A program made the position numbers and the translations under genes. From Paramicrosporidium saccamoebae KSL3 (Eukaryota > Fungi > Cryptomycota): DNA of 19,152 bases. The stretch covers positions 2,979 to 22,130 of the forward strand of contig MTSL01000085.1 of NCBI GenBank assembly GCA_002794465.1. The letters are read 5' to 3'. The notes beneath the pieces were generated by a model, which saw only the letters and a program-made list of their open reading frames with translations, made no database searches and had not been told where the DNA came from. Shown here piece by piece: positions 5,108-17,904 of the stretch (the stretch's first letter is position 1; each line of letters begins with the position of its first letter).

Positions 5108-6610
5108 TTACTCATTCGGATGGGGGCGGGTCATTGGGGGCGTGTCTTGATGCATTGGGGGAGAATAGTGGCCGTAGGGCTGACCATAGGGAGGCACAGG
5201 ATAGCCGTACACAGGGTCGCCCATCATGTACTGGGACGGTGGTGGCATAGAGTAAGGATTATAATAGCCTCCCCCATGTGGAGGATACATGGGAGGGGGA
5301 GCATAATGCTGTGGAATAAACGGCTGGCCATAAGGAACAACTAAAGAATGAGAATACACGTCTGATCTACATGGTGCAGCAGCCACGGTGGGAACGAACG
5401 CCGATGCATTCGGATTTAAATGCTTCCCAGTTGAAGAGGCGGATTGGGGTGACATTGACTCTGTTGGACTCAGTTTGTTTGAAATCTTGTCGCTAAACGC
5501 TTTATACTCCATCGCCTTGTCCTTCTTGTGCTTCTCAAACATTTCTCGTCGACACGCCTCATGGACAACGGCTCCAAATTGCGGATTGTTCTCGGCAACC
5601 TGACTCATCCTACGCTGCAGATTCTCCGTTGTCGTCTGGACCACCTCCATTGCCTGATTCAGCGACTCGGGAGTCACCTGCAGGTTGACAATAGATCTCC
5701 GTGGCTTGCGCTCCGACACTTCCGAGGCGGTGGGAGATGTTTTGTTGGTGGATGAGGTGGAGGAAGGCATACTCACTATGGGGATTTTTCCCTCTAAAGG
5801 AGCAGTCGTCGGCTTCTTGGGGGAGGACACTCCATTAGCCATTGCCGCTTGTTTGTATGAAACTGGCGAACGTTGTGCTAACCGCGCATCTTGGTCAGTA
5901 TGGGTGGAGCGTTTTGCTTCTGGTGCTCTAACAACGGCGCCATATCGGTCCTCTTCGTCTATTTGACTATCATCAAAAATCTTTCCCCTTTCCTCCATGA
6001 CATGCACATTTGTTGTTCCGCCCCTCTCAATCTCTCTCGCCAGTCGCGCCGCCTCCTTCTCCATTCTTCCATAGTCAGCGCTCTCTCGATCAATCACTGT
6101 GGTGTACTCGTGTTCGTCAAAACTGGTCACTACGCCAAAAAGTCTCTCATTCAGCTCAAACTGGTTCCAACTGCCAGGCGGGCCGTCCTCCAGTCCGTCA
6201 AGTTCCGTTTCATCGCCGCCCTCCCATCGGGACAGCTCGCGTTGTCGAGACACACCGCCGCTGATTTCAGAATCGGTGGCAAACGCAGTGCTACCCGTCA
6301 CTTCGGCAAAGTTGACCGTCTCAGCCACCAGCGAGCACAGGTCGGCAAGGGGAAACTTGAACATTTGATGGTCGACGCTCTTCTCTCCGTCCACCAAGTG
6401 CGCCAGTCTAATGGAAATTTGCTTTTCCTTCTGGTCAAACGCATGAAATATGCCCTCTACGCGCACACCACTCGACAGTCGGACGGTTACCAAGGTTCCC
6501 GTTAGCGCAAGGAGGACAAAGCCAGTGCGGGGATTTGTTTCAGACGGCTTAGCGGGTTTATTTGGCGAAGATGAGTGTTTTGTTGGCTTTGTGATAACGT
6601 CTCCTCCCAT
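5108..6610 (-). CDS. PBP1: Ataxin-2/Pbp1 poly(A)-binding-protein interactor (LSm, LsmAD, PAM2, Pro/Tyr-rich tail)
   Basis: LSm (TLVTVRLSSGVRVEGIFH), LsmAD (WNQFELNERLFGVVTSFDEHEYTTVIDR...NVHVMEERG...EEDRYGAV), PAM2-like KHLNPNASAFVP. Start uncertain: 6610 preferred, because upstream in-frame ATGs up to 6739 lie in a tandem repeat. Possible 30-nt intron at 5370-5341. Confidence 0.9.
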   Translation of the reverse strand: MGGDVITKPTKHSSSPNKPAKPSETNPRTGFVLLALTGTLVTVRLSSGVRVEGIFHAFDQKEKQISIRLAHLVDGEKSVDHQMFKFPLADLCSLVAETVNFAEVTGSTAFATDSEISGGVSRQRELSRWEGGDETELDGLEDGPPGSWNQFELNERLFGVVTSFDEHEYTTVIDRESADYGRMEKEAARLAREIERGGTTNVHVMEERGKIFDDSQIDEEDRYGAVVRAPEAKRSTHTDQDARLAQRSPVSYKQAAMANGVSSPKKPTTAPLEGKIPIVSMPSSTSSTNKTSPTASEVSERKPRRSIVNLQVTPESLNQAMEVVQTTTENLQRRMSQVAENNPQFGAVVHEACRREMFEKHKKDKAMEYKAFSDKISNKLSPTESMSPQSASSTGKHLNPNASAFVPTVAAAPCRSDVYSHSLVVPYGQPFIPQHYAPPPMYPPHGGGYYNPYSMPPPSQYMMGDPVYGYPVPPYGQPYGHYSPPMHQDTPPMTRPHPNE

Positions 6611-6657
6611 CCCAAGTCCTAGAGTACAGGGGATGTCACCATTGATGACTGCGTATC

Positions 6658-6741
6658 CATAATGCATGCTATACATGGCATAAGGCCTAATATACACGTC
6701 ACAAGGCCTAATATACACGCCATAAGGCATAATATACATGG
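6658..6741. repeat. 4 x 21-bp tandem repeat
   Basis: Units cataatgcatgctatacatgg / cataaggcctaatatacacgt / cacaaggcctaatatacacgc / cataaggcataatatacatgg, with no spacers. Confidence 0.95.
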
Positions 6742-6761
6742 TGCCGCTCGATATATCGCGT

Positions 6762-7986
6762 TTAAATTTGCTTAGACTGCTCTAGTGATTTTAGTTGTCC
6801 GCACGCCGCCATAATATCTTGGCCTCGGGTCTTTCTAATCGTGGTGGGAACGTCGAGACTCTCCAGTAGCTCACGGAACTGTTCTATTACCTTCATTGAT
6901 GTACATTCATATCCTGCACCTGGCCAGCTGTTAAATGGGATCAGATTCACATGTATCGGCATCCCAACTAACAGCGCAGCCAATTGTCGGGCATGTTGTG
7001 ATTGGTCGTTAATGCCTTTCAGCATGACATATTCAAAGGACACCCGGCGGGTGGCACAAGATGCATGTTCTATGAATTTGTGAATGGCAGAGAAGAGGAC
7101 GGGCAGAGGATAGGTTTTGTTAATGGGCATAATTTGGGAACGCAAGGCATCGTTAGGTGCATGCAAGGACACTGCCAAATTAACGCCCAGCTCGGTCGCA
7201 ATTTTGGGTATCAGCGGCGCGATCCCGGACGTGGACACTGTAACTTTACCGCGTCCAAATCCCAAGCCCCGCTGATCAGTCATGATGGATACTGCTTTGG
7301 ACAGATTCTTGAAATTATACAGCGGCTCCCCTTGCCCCATGAACACGATATTGCTGATGGTGGAGCGGATTGAATCGGGAAGAACGAGATATTGACGAAG
7401 GATATCACCCGAGGTGAGGTTACTGTCAAACTTCTGGGTGCCCGTGTGGCAGAACGTACACTGGAGGGAGCATCCAACCTGGCTACTGATGCATAGCGTT
7501 GAGCGTTCCTCTTCTGGTATTAAAACCGCTAAACAGTCTACTCTGACTGATCATTAGGTACCTTCAATTGTCCGTGTAGGTGCCACCTTGATGAGGTATT
7601 TTCGTGTTCCGTCTGAGGATTGCTGTCGTGCGATAATGGTACCATGGTCCAGTGTGGTGCGCATCTGAAGCCATTCCCTCAATACCTTTGGGATGCCAAT
7701 GGCGTCTTCCCATCGTCTGCCTCCTATCCATGGTTACAAACCCTACTTTACAAATACGCTGGAAATGGACGAATTGATAAACTTGGGAGGGTCGATATCG
7801 TTCAAACTCACCGTCCTGAAGGAGATTGGTAAAATCTTTCACAGTATTTCCAACTGCATCTTGTAAACTGGGTAAACCTGTTGCAGTCTTCTCACTTGCC
7901 GTGCTTCTCCCAACTATATTCTGTAATTCTTTTTGGACCACGGCAATATTCTCGCTCGACAAGAAACGTACAGGAATTTTCCTCAT
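6762..7986 (-). CDS. rlmN: RlmN-family radical-SAM RNA C2-adenosine methyltransferase, 385 aa (406 aa if ATG 8049 is used)
   Basis: Exons 7986-7758, 7723-7562, 7528-6762 (1158 nt); introns 7757-7724 (34 nt, donor inferred from reading frame) and 7561-7529 (33 nt). The spliced product has SSDGTRKYLI, IEAVLIP, TLCISSQVGCSLQCTFCHTG (CxxxCxxC), MGQGEPLYN, FEYVML, VNLIPFN, RGQDIMAACGQL. The cluster motif lies outside the track ORFs. Confidence 0.95.
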
Positions 7987-8071
7987 TCGGCCTACTTGAG
8001 CATTATCTATTTTTTCGTATCTAATATTTTCGTATGTGCTGTGGTGCATCTACTGTTTTGCAATTACACTC

Positions 8072-8118
8072 GCATATCCCTTCACACAACTGCATATCCC
8101 TCCACACAACTGCATATC
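8072..8118. repeat. 2.35 x 20-bp tandem repeat
   Basis: gcatatcccttcacacaact / gcatatccctccacacaact / gcatatc. Confidence 0.9.
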
Positions 8119-8168
8119 AATGCTCTACATCATAGTACCGATGATTTATATAGTTTAATGGTATACAG

Positions 8169-8993
8169 CTACTCTTCTTCAGCGGCAGGAGGCGAAGTGC
8201 TGGAGCCAGTGCGACTGCCCATCATTCCCTCCATCCTACACGTCAAATCACTTTAAACATTTACATTGATGCAAGGTTGGGATTGCTCATCATATTTCGC
8301 ATGGCCTCTGGATTGCCCATCATTTGTGCAGCCATGTTCATAATTTCTGGATTGTTCATCAACGATGCAAAATCCATCGGTGGCGTGCCTGGATTCTTGG
8401 CTGCCGGTTTGCTCTTCTTCCGTGCCTGCTCGATAGCACTCATATAGCTTGCATTGTCCGGCTCCAGCTCAGACGCCTTGGTGTATGCCTCAACAGCCTT
8501 GTCTACATTCCCAACCCCCAAATACGCAGCTCCAAGCCGACCGTAAGCTTTAGCATAGCGAGGATTCAAGGTGATGGCGGCCAGACCATCCTCAATGGCG
8601 CTGTCGTAATCCTCCTGCATTGTAAAGGCGGCCGCTCTGTTGCTGTAATAGACGGCATTTGACGAGTCCAACTCGATAGCCTTTGTGTACTCATCCGCAG
8701 CGTCCAGCGCACGTTTTGCAGAAAGATGCACATTTCCTGCGTTCTTATGCTCCTCTGCAGCCGCCTTGCAGCCCTCATTGGCGACGCCAGTAGAAATGGT
8801 AAGAGACGGTGCAGCAGAAATGGATGCGGGAGAGATACTGTAGGCTTGTTTGATGCACGATGCAGCCACTACCATTAGTGCATTCCCGAATAATACCTTG
8901 AAGACCTTCTTTTTGCACTCCATCAACTAGAGCTACCTCTCCTTCAAGGAACTTGACAATGGCTGCCACTAAGACTGTATTGGACTGGCGCAT
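8169..8993 (-). CDS. SGT2: Sgt2/SGTA TPR co-chaperone of the GET pathway, 255 aa
   Basis: Exons 8993-8897, 8868-8265, 8235-8169 (768 nt); introns 8896-8869 (28 nt) and 8264-8236 (29 nt). Dimerisation helix VAAIVKFLEGE...KEGLQVAASCIKQAY; three TPRs (AEEHKNAGN...AVYYSNRAAA...KAYGRLG); Met/Asn/Pro-rich DP domain. Confidence 0.93.
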
Positions 8994-9025
8994 AACGATA
9001 AATCCAATTAGCATTAACCTCAAGT

Positions 9026-9822
9026 TTATTTGGTACAATCGATCAAGGAGCGCAATAGGGTACTGCTGAGCTTTGACTCGGCGATTCCGTGAACATGGAT
9101 GTTTATCAGATCGACAATGACGAGCTCGAGCTCAGGGATGCCATTCTCTTTCCTAATTCGATTAACTAAACAATGATTTGTGGGATAAGAGTCATACTGG
9201 CCCGACCGCCGTCTATGGTTTCGTGGGAGACTACGAGGGCATTGATGCCTTTGATTATCGTTGTGGGTCCATACGGATCTGTCAGCTTTACCGTCTCAAT
9301 GGTAATGTGAGATGGAGCAAAGGCACTTAGAAAGGTTTGGACATTTTGTGCACGCTTTGCCCACGATTCGATACGCTCCTTAAAGTGTTTCTGCTTCAAC
9401 ATGTCGCCCTCATCTGTGATCCCTACGACAATCCGTTCCGTGGCTAGCAGTGCAGCAACCGACAGCATCAGTTTGTGCCCCGCGTGGAGATGATCAAAAG
9501 TTCCACCGATAGCAACCACTGGATACTGACTTGTCCTGTACTCCCTTAGAGTTTGTGGTGGAGAGGACAGAGATGGGAGGGTTATATTAAGCCCATCCGA
9601 ATGGCAGTAACGGGGTGGAAGAAGCACTTGGACGTCTAGGCTTGGTTTTCGTATGGTGAGCATGGCATTTGTTAGCTGTTGATATGTTTCCTTGAGAAAT
9701 GCATAAGGAGTGGCCAGGTTGTCGCACTTTCCGACATTGGCCACCACAAGGACGAGTTGTTTGTGGGAATTGCTGACCAACTCTTCCACCACATCCAATG
9801 TCATAATAATATCTTCTGTCAT
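9026..9822 (-). CDS. CAB4: Stand-alone phosphopantetheine adenylyltransferase (CoA biosynthesis), 254 aa
   Basis: Exons 9822-9198 and 9165-9026; intron 9197-9166 (32 nt). GGTFDHLHAGH (HxGH), DPYGP, LVVSHET, and after splicing INRIRKENG...KLSSTLLR. Confidence 0.9.
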
Positions 9823-9881: not shown

Positions 9882-11310
9882 ATGACGAGCAAACGCCTTT
9901 ACCTGCGACTTGTTCCGCAGCTTCAGAGCTACTCCACCAAGGTTCGATTGATGGCAGTATTGTTGATGAGTCTATAGAGCCTGAAGGAGCGGATGGCGGA
10001 GATTATCCCGGGTCGGAGGGAGGAGATAAAGGCACTGAAGGCGGAGCATGGCAACAAGTCCTTGGGAGAGGTAACTGTTAACATGGCCTATGGTGGAATG
10101 CGTGGAATCAAAGGTCTAATTTATGAAACATCTCTGCTCGATGCAGAGGAAGTACGGATTGACGACGATTGGTGATTGTTAGGGAATTCGGTTCCGGGGA
10201 CTGACCATCCCAGAATGTCGTGAGAAGCTTCCCAAGGCATCAGGTGGCGAGGAGCCGTTGCCAGAGGGTCTCTTTTATTTACTGATGACAGGAGAAGTGC
10301 CCACAACGGATCAAGTAAAGTTGATTTCAGAGGATTGGAAGTTGCGTGCCCAAACACCACTTCCCTCCTATCTTGTAGAGCTACTCAGCAAAAACGTTCC
10401 CAAGACACTCCACCCAATGTCCCAGCTTACAATGGCAGTCATGGCGCTACAGGAGCGCAGTCTATTTGCCCGTGCATATGGAGAGGGCAAAATTAACAAG
10501 AACAATATGTGGGAGTATGCCTTTGAAGATGTAAACAATCTTATTGCTGTGCTCCCACAAGTAGCGGCACTGATCTATCGGACACGTTATGGTAAAAAGG
10601 CCGCTGACTCGAATGTGTCAGATTGGGCAGGCCGATTTGCAGGAGAATTGGGATTTACCGATGCAAAGTTTACGGAATTGCTGCGTCTGTACTTGTCGAT
10701 CCACACAGACCATGAGGGCGGAAATGTAAGTGCTCATACCGTTAAATTAGTGGGAAGTGCATTATCAGATCCTTATCTTTCCTTTGCGGCCGGTGTCAAC
10801 GGACTGGCAGGTCCGCTCCATGGTCTTGCTAATCAAGAAGTACTCCAATGGATGCTCAAGTTGCGTCGTGAAGTAGGCGATTCGCCCTCCGATCAGCAAA
10901 TTACCGATTATCTTTGGACCACCCTGAAGGCAGGCCAAGTGGTACCCGGGTTTGGACATGCCGTGCTTCGAAAAACTGATCCGCGATATCTCTGTCAACG
11001 ACAATTTGCCCAGAAACATTTACCCGCCGATCCATTGTTCCGTCTGACCTCTCAAATCTACGAAATTGCGCCCCGTGTGCTCGAGGAACATGGCAAGACC
11101 AAGAATCCATGGCCCAACGTGGATGCCCACAGCGGAGTTTTGTTGCAGCATTACGGGCTGGTGGAGCAGGATTACTACACAGTGCTCTTTGCCGTTTCCA
11201 GAGCACTAGGTGCATTATCAGGTCTTATTTGGGATCGTGCATTGGCATTCCCGATTGAGAGACCAAAAAGTCTTACTACAGAGGCCGTAAAGAAGTTGGT
11301 GGGTGCGTGA
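9882..11310 (+). CDS. CIT1: Mitochondrial citrate synthase, 453 aa
   Basis: Exons 9882-9941, 9978-10151, 10183-11310; introns 9942-9977 (36 nt) and 10152-10182 (31 nt). Motifs [71 protein letters not shown]. Confidence 0.97.
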
Positions 11311-13742: not shown

Positions 13743-13784
13743 GTGTATAGTGCGTGGTGTATGGTGCAGGGTGTGGGGCGTAGG
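13743..13784. repeat. 3 x 14-bp degenerate G/T-rich tandem repeat
   Basis: gtgtatagtgcgtg / gtgtatggtgcagg / gtgtggggcgtagg (11/14 and 10/14 identity between neighbours). Confidence 0.6.
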
Positions 13785-16971: not shown

Positions 16972-17904
16972 TTATAGAAACGGCCTGAAGGAAACTAAAT
17001 GGGCAATTTCGTAGGGAATTGCCGCGTCTAGAAGGATCCCCGCAAACACAATGGCGCCGAGCCACCGATTTGATTTGAATTTGGAAAGACAATCGGCTAC
17101 ATTATGGGGCCGAAGGGTGTAAATCTGCCATGTCATGTGTACGGCCGCACCGGCAATACCGGCATAGTAGAATAATGACATTCCTTGCTGCATCCCTGCA
17201 ACGACGAACGAGCTGATGGAGACGGCCGCAAATCCGCACAGCCATCGCTTTACGTTCCCGCCGAATCGGATGGCCGTCGACTTGACGCCAACCTGCAGAT
17301 CGTCTTTAATGTCCTGAAGGGCGTATATGGTGTCATAGAGCATTGTCCAGGAAATGCCAGCCAAGTAAAGAGGCAGGACAACGGGTAATTGGAGGGTACC
17401 GGTTTGCGCTGTCCAGCCCAATAATACTCCCCAATTGAATGTGAGACCAAGGACGAATTGAGGCCAGTATGTGACACGCTTCATTAGCGGATACAACGCC
17501 ACAGGTAGCAGAGATGCAGCGCCGACAGCAACACTTGTCCAATTCAACTGCAGTAGAATGACAAGTCCCACTGATAACTGCGCACCCAAAAACACCACTG
17601 CCTGACGGGTGCTCAGCCTCCCCGCTGGTAACGGCCTTTTTCGCGTCCTCTCGACAAGTGCATCAATCCGTTGATCCCATAGGTCGTTTATTGTACACCC
17701 TGCCCCACGCATTACCACCGCTCCCGTGGCAAATAGCGCTAATAGAGGCAAGCTGACGGGCGGAGTAAAGGCGAGTGACCAGGCAGAGGGCCAAAAGAGC
17801 AGCCAGGAGCCGATGGGCTTATCGAGGCGCATCAAATCTGTGTAGGGATGCATGCGACGGAAAAGGGGGCGGTTCCAGAGCGCCATGATGGGATACCGTA
17901 TCAT
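16972..17904 (-). CDS. COQ2: 4-hydroxybenzoate polyprenyltransferase (UbiA family)
   Basis: LMRLDKPIGSWLLFWP, RGAGCTINDLWDQRIDALVERTRKRPLPAG, YPLMKRVTYWPQ, YDTIYALQDIKDD, KSTA; intronless. Confidence 0.97.
   Translation of the reverse strand: MIRYPIMALWNRPLFRRMHPYTDLMRLDKPIGSWLLFWPSAWSLAFTPPVSLPLLALFATGAVVMRGAGCTINDLWDQRIDALVERTRKRPLPAGRLSTRQAVVFLGAQLSVGLVILLQLNWTSVAVGAASLLPVALYPLMKRVTYWPQFVLGLTFNWGVLLGWTAQTGTLQLPVVLPLYLAGISWTMLYDTIYALQDIKDDLQVGVKSTAIRFGGNVKRWLCGFAAVSISSFVVAGMQQGMSLFYYAGIAGAAVHMTWQIYTLRPHNVADCLSKFKSNRWLGAIVFAGILLDAAIPYEIAHLVSFRPFL

Follow-up and report, generated by a model that had tools for sequence, protein, structure and literature searches.

A spliced RlmN gene of the fungal clade VI in Paramicrosporidium saccamoebae and its predicted role in the mitochondrion

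Introduction

What kind of enzyme is encoded when a gene of a bacterial RNA methyltransferase family is found in the nuclear genome of a fungal parasite, from where was the gene acquired, and in which cellular compartment does its product act? These questions are raised by a locus of Paramicrosporidium saccamoebae, an intranuclear parasite of amoebae that belongs to the Rozellomycota and is placed close to the base of the microsporidian lineage. We analyzed a stretch of 19,152 nucleotides (nt) from strain KSL3 (assembly GCA_002794465.1, contig MTSL01000085.1, positions 2,979 to 22,130 of the forward strand), referred to below as the window, in which a complete gene for an RlmN-like radical S-adenosylmethionine (radical-SAM) enzyme is encoded on the minus strand at 6762..8049; all coordinates are those of the window. 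An earlier interpretation made from the letters alone, called here the sequence-only reading, had described this gene as a spliced, alphaproteobacterial-like RlmN with a probable mitochondrial presequence. Taking all lines of evidence together, we consider it probable that the gene encodes a functional RlmN-type radical-SAM RNA methyltransferase, nuclear-encoded and predicted to form 2-methyladenosine (m2A) within the mitochondrion.

Results and Discussion

Structure of the RlmN gene

The spliced gene model encodes 385 amino acids from ATG 7986 and comprises three exons (7986..7758, 7723..7562, and 7528..6762), across which the reading frame switches twice before the stop codon TAA at 6764..6762. 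In the product of exon 1 (7758..7986, minus strand, as are all parts of the gene) a presequence-like N-terminus is followed by a linker of low conservation and by the first part of the N-terminal RlmN domain, up to EFERYRPSQVYQFVHFQ and the first base of the codon for R77; a YR..Q motif within this exon is aligned to FRADQV of Escherichia coli RlmN. Intron 1 (7724..7757; 34 nt, GTATTT...GGATAG) is required to join the frames. It is followed by exon 2 (7562..7723), which encodes GRRWEDAIGIPKVLREWL...TRTIE, by intron 2 (7529..7561; 33 nt, GTACCT...GTTTAG), and by exon 3 (6762..7528), which carries the radical-SAM core and the C-terminus, together with the match to the Radical_SAM domain (PF04055) and the alignment to the E. 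coli RlmN structure 3rf9. Both introns begin with GTA, end with TAG, and are in phase 1.

The acceptor of intron 2 has three candidate positions. The 33-nt intron leads into IEAVLIPEE, in agreement with the homologs P0002 and P0003 (VEAVLIPE and VETVLIPE), its use improves the match to E. coli RlmN from 255 to 262 bits, and its acceptor is the only one of the three that is present in L001, a contig from a sister species with 84% nucleotide identity. We also considered a 24-nt intron (acceptor 7538), which would insert the residues DCL, and a 48-nt intron (acceptor 7514), which is used in the public gene model and loses the conserved AVLIP; the acceptors of both are missing from L001, and both were rejected.

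In L001 the introns are again 34 and 33 nt long and occupy positions identical to those in P. saccamoebae, and all four gaps in the alignment of the two species are located in introns. Across 344 spliced codons the two genes differ at 31, 15, and 114 sites of codon positions one, two, and three, respectively, and the ratio of nonsynonymous to synonymous substitution rates (dN/dS) is 0.06; the L001 contig begins within exon 1, and a further contig, L031, runs in the other direction, so that the 5' end of the sister gene is covered by neither. The low dN/dS demonstrates strong purifying selection on RlmN. In L002, a more distant relative, a 37-nt intron occupies the codon position of intron 1. 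Three other introns in the window are 29-36 nt long and end with TAG, one of them in the neighboring gene for an SGT-like co-chaperone (8264..8236) and two in a citrate synthase gene (9942..9977 and 10152..10182); thus micro-introns are normal for this genome.

Assignment to the RlmN family

By every sequence and structure criterion that we applied, the predicted protein is RlmN and not the related enzyme Cfr, as the sequence-only reading had proposed. The NCBIfam equivalog model for RlmN (TIGR00048) is matched with 353.3 bits against a cutoff of 290 (E = 1e-105, profile positions 13-350 of 355), while the Cfr models reach 209-212 bits against cutoffs of 468-550. The match to the E. coli RlmN structure 3rf9 (E = 7e-77) covers 318 aligned residues and includes all catalytic residues; identity to E. 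coli RlmN (3rf9, 3rfa, 5hr7) is 38-39%. No match to the Pfam domain RlmN_N (PF21016) was obtained at E <= 0.001, the N-terminal domain being divergent in sequence.

The N-terminal domain is nevertheless kept at the level of predicted structure. An AlphaFold2 model built with 50 homologs has a pLDDT of 86, with residues 41-380 mostly above 90 and residues 1-40 low and outside the fold. The top ten Foldseek matches in the Protein Data Bank (PDB) are all RlmN, namely the E. coli enzyme and the homolog from Sphaerobacter thermophilus (6fz6). Template modeling (TM) scores against E. coli RlmN are 0.77-0.80 on the query and 0.85-0.89 on the target, with a root-mean-square deviation of about 2.7 A and of 2.6 A for the best match, and the alignment to 5hr7_A spans 343 columns (TM 0.80/0.86) with the N-terminal accessory domain included. 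Next in rank is Cfr, the C8 methyltransferase of A2503 in 23S rRNA, which shares the fold and the chemistry (TM 0.65 on the query and 0.80 on the target); other radical-SAM enzymes score far lower. In contrast to the SSQCGC and MGMGEA of Cfr, the P. saccamoebae protein carries SSQVGC. We see no reason in the sequence to expect C8 methylation or a role in resistance.

The catalytic set that had been noticed from the letters alone is borne out by alignment with E. coli RlmN. The glutamate of IEAV (E130) corresponds to E105 and the cysteine of TLCISS (C143, codon 7491..7493) to C118, the three cysteines of CSLQCTFC (C150, C154, and C157; 7449..7472) correspond to C125, C129, and C132, and the cysteine of AACGQL (C373, codon 6801..6803) corresponds to C355. 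C143, C373, and the CxxxCxxC motif are invariant in our alignment A1 of 50 sequences. The CxxxCxxC motif binds a [4Fe-4S] cluster; C355 of the E. coli enzyme carries the methyl group, and C118 resolves the covalent enzyme-RNA intermediate. Within the MGQGEP motif (residues 194-199, 7323..7340), G195, G197, E198, and P199 are invariant, and Q196 replaces the methionine of the bacterial MGMGEP (M178 in E. coli); bacteria mostly have MGMGEP, some with I or T in place of the methionine. The P. saccamoebae protein further differs from E. coli RlmN by a 40-residue N-terminal extension, by being encoded by a spliced gene, and by its substrates, which are presumably mitochondrial.

Membership in a fungal clade close to alphaproteobacterial RlmN

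The best database matches of the protein are eukaryotic contigs with 59-92% identity. The next ones, with 44-53% identity, come from Kickxellomycotina, Entomophthoromycotina, Mortierellomycotina, Endogone, Umbelopsis, and Mucorales, and are interspersed with bacterial RlmN of 44-49% identity. All bacterial matches named below the phylum level are alphaproteobacterial (Hyphomicrobiales, Roseospira, Micavibrio, Fretibacter, Rhodospirillaceae). The sequences of the basal group (P0002-P0014, P0018, P0032, and P0054) lie on eukaryotic contigs, and a profile search started from this group found no named eukaryote beyond Mucoromycota and Zoopagomycota. The alphaproteobacterial likeness noted in the sequence-only reading is also visible in the motifs FCHTGTQ, IPFNxWPG, and AACGQLKS, which are present in most sequences of the eukaryotic clade and of the alphaproteobacteria-like (alpha-like) bacterial set, and in none of 25 other bacteria, five Gammaproteobacteria among them; the alpha-like set was chosen by similarity to the query and is not an unbiased sample. 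The same reading had pointed to MGQGEP in place of MGMGEP. The replacement is real and is not peculiar to this gene: it is found in all 52 sequences of the eukaryotic clade and in none of the 147 bacterial ones (0/122 alpha-like, 0/25 other), and therefore marks the whole fungal clade.

The phylogeny was computed by neighbor joining (NJ) on 347-348 columns, as a tree of 140 sequences with 200 bootstrap replicates and as trees of 199 sequences with 100 replicates and two distance corrections. Cfr served as the outgroup, and 24 scattered bacterial RlmN genes that share an eight-residue word were included as outgroups only, not as nearest relatives. The eukaryotic clade is monophyletic with bootstrap values of 43-79% and is sister to the alpha-like group; the two together are split from the rest at 73%, with Gammaproteobacteria next at 84%. 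Within the eukaryotic clade the Paramicrosporidium group stands apart from the zygomycete phyla, which roughly follow the species tree. This agreement with fungal phylogeny speaks for a gene inherited vertically since an early fungal ancestor; the common ancestor of Rozellomycota and zygomycete fungi probably had it already.

Eukaryotic RlmN-like proteins have been sorted into six clades, and horizontal transfer has been named as the probable source of clade VI, which occurs only in various fungi and has alphaproteobacterial RlmN as a close relative (Duan et al. 2024, PMC10838301). That study reports neither a localization nor a function for clade VI and names no member from Rozellomycota (PMC10838301), and our literature search found no paper on the function of a fungal RlmN. 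Judged by its sequence, the P. saccamoebae protein is a member of clade VI: it groups with the proteins of Mucoromycota and Zoopagomycota, carries MGQGEP, and is nearest to alphaproteobacterial RlmN. It differs from the described members in that it comes from a reduced intranuclear parasite, has introns of 33-34 nt and a shorter presequence-like tip, and is concealed in a chimeric public gene model. Clade VI itself was known (PMC10838301); what is new is a basal member from the Rozellomycota. This extends the published clade to the base of the lineage that leads to Microsporidia and moves the gene back to an early ancestor of the fungi.

Two side observations concern other members of the clade. 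Contig L033 (240 kb, Logan SRR31089926) encodes an uninterrupted clade VI RlmN at 8001..9095 within a very compact, apparently intron-poor eukaryotic genome; this gene adjoins a gene for a Twinkle-like helicase (DnaB_C), and a citrate synthase gene lies about 5 kb away. In Coemansia, the RlmN gene models P0021, P0023, and P0055 carry, as a fusion, either a ubiquitin-conjugating domain (PF00179) or HD domains (PF13328, PF01966), and these fusions may be further annotation chimeras or conserved neighbors.

Origin of the gene

The sequence-only reading had derived the gene from the mitochondrial endosymbiont. Under such descent, the gene would stem from the mitochondrial ancestor and would have been lost from all eukaryotes but some early-diverging fungi. 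This is consistent with the position of the eukaryotic clade as sister to a broad alphaproteobacterial set (Hyphomicrobiales, Rhodospirillales, Micavibrio, Fretibacter) rather than within one order, and with a protein that is probably mitochondrial. Yet a gene of endosymbiotic origin would be looked for in several eukaryotic supergroups, and two database searches and the literature yielded fungi only: the named eukaryotic members in both searches are Mucoromycota, Zoopagomycota, and the present Rozellomycota lineage, and Duan et al. 2024 likewise saw clade VI in fungi only and favor horizontal transfer (PMC10838301). Many independent losses would be required, the nodes in question have weak support, and the bacterial sample was picked by similarity to the query. 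We therefore regard endosymbiont descent as unlikely.

The alternative is that an alphaproteobacterial gene entered the fungal stem once, by an ancient horizontal transfer, after which a presequence was gained and Dikarya, most chytrids, Rozella, Mitosporidium, and Microsporidia lost the gene. This scenario is more parsimonious than endosymbiont descent because of the fungi-only distribution found in both searches and in the published survey (PMC10838301). The parallel between gene tree and fungal phylogeny, with the Paramicrosporidium group apart from the zygomycetes, is as expected of vertical descent after one acquisition, and the clade-wide MGQGEP is compatible with a single origin. On the other hand, the topology of the tree fits endosymbiont descent equally well, the sequences of the basal clade have no taxon assignment, and the gene may have passed between fungal lineages. 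Weighing these points, we lean towards the single horizontal transfer, which we hold to be somewhat on the probable side.

Start codon and predicted mitochondrial role

Translation from ATG 7986 yields the N-terminus MRKIPVRFLSS (codons 7954..7986), a putative short mitochondrial presequence that contains three basic and no acidic residues and in which RFL|S resembles an R-3 cleavage motif. This tip is followed by a linker of about 30 residues modeled with low confidence. An upstream in-frame ATG at 8049, located directly after an in-frame TAG, would add this codon and 20 more (7987..8049), that is, the 21 residues MHHSTYENIRYEKIDNAQVGR, which have three acidic residues among the first 15 and are not presequence-like; this segment is probably 5' leader. 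Both starts had been described correctly from the letters alone. The 63 nt between the two ATGs have a GC content of 0.37, against 0.38 in the intergenic spacer, and contain a tandem repeat (15-nt unit, 2.2 copies) at 8004..8035. Codon-usage log-odds and GC content give no decision between the two ATGs, codon bias being weak and the segment short, and position -3 is a pyrimidine in front of either ATG. Since the orthologs begin with presequence-like peptides, homology points to ATG 7986 as the likely start. Leaky scanning is conceivable. The earlier suggestion of dual targeting through two starts did not gain from our analysis, since the second in-frame ATG is the one thing that speaks for it.

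In the first 20 residues of the eukaryotic orthologs, basic residues number 3.6 and acidic ones 0.9 on average, and an acidic residue first occurs at a median position of 20; the corresponding values for alpha-like bacterial N-termini are 1.8, 2.1, and 9. The orthologs' N-termini are basic and acid-free for about 20-30 residues, as in MLRRPFSVRGFASVRSFKV of Mucor, MSLAALRRASPVVTAGRRL of Martensiomyces, and MWKHRATSTAIAIRRMTSLQ of L002, and N-termini that are basic, rich in serine and threonine, and acid-free are found in Kickxellomycotina, Mucorales, and the close relatives L002, P0005, and P0010. No membrane anchor is present at the C-terminus of the P. saccamoebae protein, which ends in ...AACGQLKSLEQSKQI. 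The mitochondrial DNA of P. saccamoebae (25.4 kb) encodes rnL, rnS, 23 tRNAs, and a full respiratory chain (PMC5701793).

Genes for three other mitochondrial proteins are located within 11 kb of RlmN, namely COQ2 (16972..17904, minus strand), mitochondrial ribosomal protein L3 (18022..18969, plus strand), and citrate synthase (9882..11310, plus strand). We used the short basic N-termini of these three proteins as a yardstick for presequences in P. saccamoebae; those of citrate synthase and COQ2 show that short basic presequences are in use in this organism, and the tip of RlmN is of this style.

We favor, as the probable course of events suggested by these sequence features, import into the mitochondrion and formation of m2A on mitochondrial large subunit (LSU) rRNA, on mitochondrial tRNA, or on both. 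Translation would begin at ATG 7986, the protein would be imported via its short basic N-terminal presequence, and its iron-sulfur (Fe-S) cluster would be loaded in the mitochondrion. The enzyme would then methylate C2 of the A2503-equivalent in mitochondrial LSU rRNA and/or of A37 in some mitochondrial tRNAs. If the mechanism is that of RlmN, a methyl group on C373 would be activated by the 5'-deoxyadenosyl radical and added to the adenine, and C143 would resolve the resulting enzyme-RNA adduct.

Several observations weigh against this proposal. The acid-free N-terminus is only 11 residues long and is followed by E12, E21, and E32, which makes it shorter than those of the orthologs, and a start at ATG 8049 would give an N-terminus unlike a presequence. 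To our knowledge, m2A has not been reported in any mitochondrial RNA. The bootstrap values at the deep nodes are modest (43-79%, NJ trees only). Eukaryotic RlmN proteins elsewhere are also not uniformly directed into organelles: plant RLMNL3 acts outside them (PMC10838301), and the RlmN of Toxoplasma gondii resides on the outer mitochondrial membrane, facing the cytosol (PMC5749711).

The Arabidopsis proteins RLMNL1 and RLMNL2 (chloroplast) and RLMNL3 (non-chloroplast) are likewise nuclear-encoded RlmN homologs, which introduce m2A into the rRNA and tRNA of organelles or into tRNA of the cytosol (PMC10838301). They belong, however, to clades I, II, and III, which have cyanobacterial, deltaproteobacterial, or no close prokaryotic relatives, and they keep MGMGE. 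TgRlmN of T. gondii is also an RlmN-like radical-SAM protein of a eukaryote and is found at the mitochondrion, but a C-terminal transmembrane domain anchors its tail in the outer membrane (PMC5749711), whereas the P. saccamoebae protein is without an anchor and has a putative N-terminal signal instead.

RLMNL3 provides the precedent for another possibility, in which the P. saccamoebae enzyme would be a cytosolic or nuclear writer of m2A37 in tRNA, and the N-terminal extension would be a linker or a regulatory tail. RLMNL3 is excluded from chloroplasts and plant cytosolic tRNA contains m2A (PMC10838301); the brevity of the acid-free stretch (11 residues) and the upstream in-frame ATG, which would bury the tip, are in line with such a role. 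However, the N-termini of the orthologs from Kickxellomycotina, Mucorales, L002, P0005, and P0010 are of the classic presequence type, and clade VI is separate from the clade III of RLMNL3. A cytosolic or nuclear role thus appears improbable to us.

Should the proposed import and methylation in the mitochondrion hold, some fungal mitochondria may carry m2A, a mark that is known in bacteria and chloroplasts and is absent from yeast and human, the models by which mitochondrial RNA modification is defined. A bolder version, which we consider doubtful, is that clade VI RlmN is an endosymbiont relic by which early-diverging fungi still introduce m2A into the LSU rRNA and tRNA of their mitochondria, and that the clade-wide change from methionine to glutamine in MGQGEP is an adaptation to the mitochondrial reductant or Fe-S supply. 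If true, neither a radical-SAM RNA methyltransferase nor m2A would have been shown in a mitochondrion before.

Genomic neighborhood

The RlmN gene is flanked on the same strand by two separate genes. Upstream, an SGT-like TPR co-chaperone is encoded at 8169..8926 (minus strand; its open reading frame extends to 8926), with its own stop codon TAG at 8171..8169. Its 29-nt intron (8264..8236) lies just before a methionine-rich C-terminal tail, and L002 has a 31-nt intron at the same codon (about 5525..5555). Downstream, an ataxin-2/Pbp1-like gene with an LsmAD domain is encoded at 5108..6667 (minus strand), and its start is probably ATG 6667 or 6610. The window also encodes a Pho80-type cyclin, an NDR kinase, PABPN, and the COQ2, L3, and citrate synthase genes mentioned above; no tRNA genes and no Rfam matches were found in it. 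The citrate synthase open reading frame at 10258..11310 has 100% identity to the GenBank protein of P. saccamoebae. In the metagenomic relatives L002 and L003 the order TPR-RlmN-LsmAD(-cyclin) is retained as separate open reading frames with citrate synthase nearby; the TPR gene is separately called in L002, L003, and L029, and LsmAD open reading frames are separate in L002, L003, and L004. The adjacency of RlmN and ataxin-2 is not conserved in Linnemannia.

This neighborhood bears on the possibility that the gene is a bacterial contaminant, which the family as a bacterial one and the assembly of the genome from an amoeba-culture metagenome (PMC5701793) might suggest. The gene contains two spliceosomal introns that restore the frame and are kept in the sister species, its neighbors on the same contig (SGT, ataxin-2, cyclin, citrate synthase, NDR kinase) are eukaryotic, the gene order is conserved in relatives, and the protein falls inside the fungal clade. 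The conserved introns, the eukaryotic neighbors, and the conserved order therefore exclude contamination to the point where we give it practically no weight, and the view of a nuclear gene with two micro-introns in the sequence-only reading stands.

The public protein is a three-gene chimera

The only public protein at this locus is PJF19035.1 (A0A2H9TMQ1; 1096 amino acids), annotated as a 'Cfr family radical SAM enzyme', which joins SGT, RlmN, and ataxin-2 and maps to 8875..8264, 8019..7810, 7724..6804, and 6706..5111 on the minus strand. PJF19035.1 is a chimera of these three genes. A true fusion of TPR, rRNA methyltransferase, and ataxin-2 parts could be argued from the existence of the GenBank annotation, which clusters with the RlmN exon, and from the adjacency of the three genes on one strand. 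It would, however, need 'introns' of 244, 85, and 97 nt, out of line with the 29-36 nt of all five verifiable introns in the window. Moreover, the 244-nt 'intron' removes the SGT C-terminus and stop codon together with the RlmN start, the 85-nt 'intron' removes 18 conserved RlmN codons in the N-terminal domain (EFERYRPSQVYQFVHFQR), and the 97-nt 'intron' (6803..6707) removes the invariant catalytic cysteine of CGQL and the RlmN stop codon. The skipped RlmN codons are conserved in the sister species, where substitutions follow a synonymous pattern, and the three genes are separate open reading frames in relatives. Introns of Rhizopus are longer than those of P. saccamoebae. A further point against the fusion is that the annotation was made with Augustus trained on Rhizopus (PMC5701793). 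We consider it extremely improbable that the public model is right.

The correction matters for the published record. In a 2026 survey of ataxin-2 (PMC12898128) the chimera was entered as a natural domain addition of TPR and rRNA methyltransferase to ataxin-2, so that the sole public protein for the locus, which lacks the catalytic cysteine, is cited as an ataxin-2/rRNA-methyltransferase fusion.

The public citrate synthase model (401 amino acids, starting with MAEIIPG) is affected as well. It misses a 5' exon with a presequence-like N-terminus (ATG 9882, followed by the 36-nt intron 9942..9977, plus strand), and it treats 27 conserved codons as intron, the real second intron being 31 nt long (10152..10182). 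With the models of both RlmN and citrate synthase wrong in a genome of approximately 30-nt introns, the gene models need to be predicted anew.

Spacers and tandem repeats

The spacer from the SGT stop codon to ATG 8049 (8050..8168, minus strand) presumably contains the promoter and 5' region of RlmN. It carries TATATAAA at 8152..8145, which, to judge from its sequence, could set the transcription start upstream of both ATGs, and a tandem repeat of 2.3 copies of a 20-nt unit at 8118..8072. The spacer between RlmN and ataxin-2 contains 3.3 copies of a 21-nt unit at 6670..6738, which are read as coding sequence in the long ataxin-2 open reading frame 5108..6739. Short tandem repeats of this kind (units of 14-21 nt, 2.2-3.3 copies) are thus present in spacers near gene starts on both sides of RlmN (8072..8118, 8004..8035, 6670..6738, and 13743..13774), and they may be promoter or terminator elements of a compact genome.

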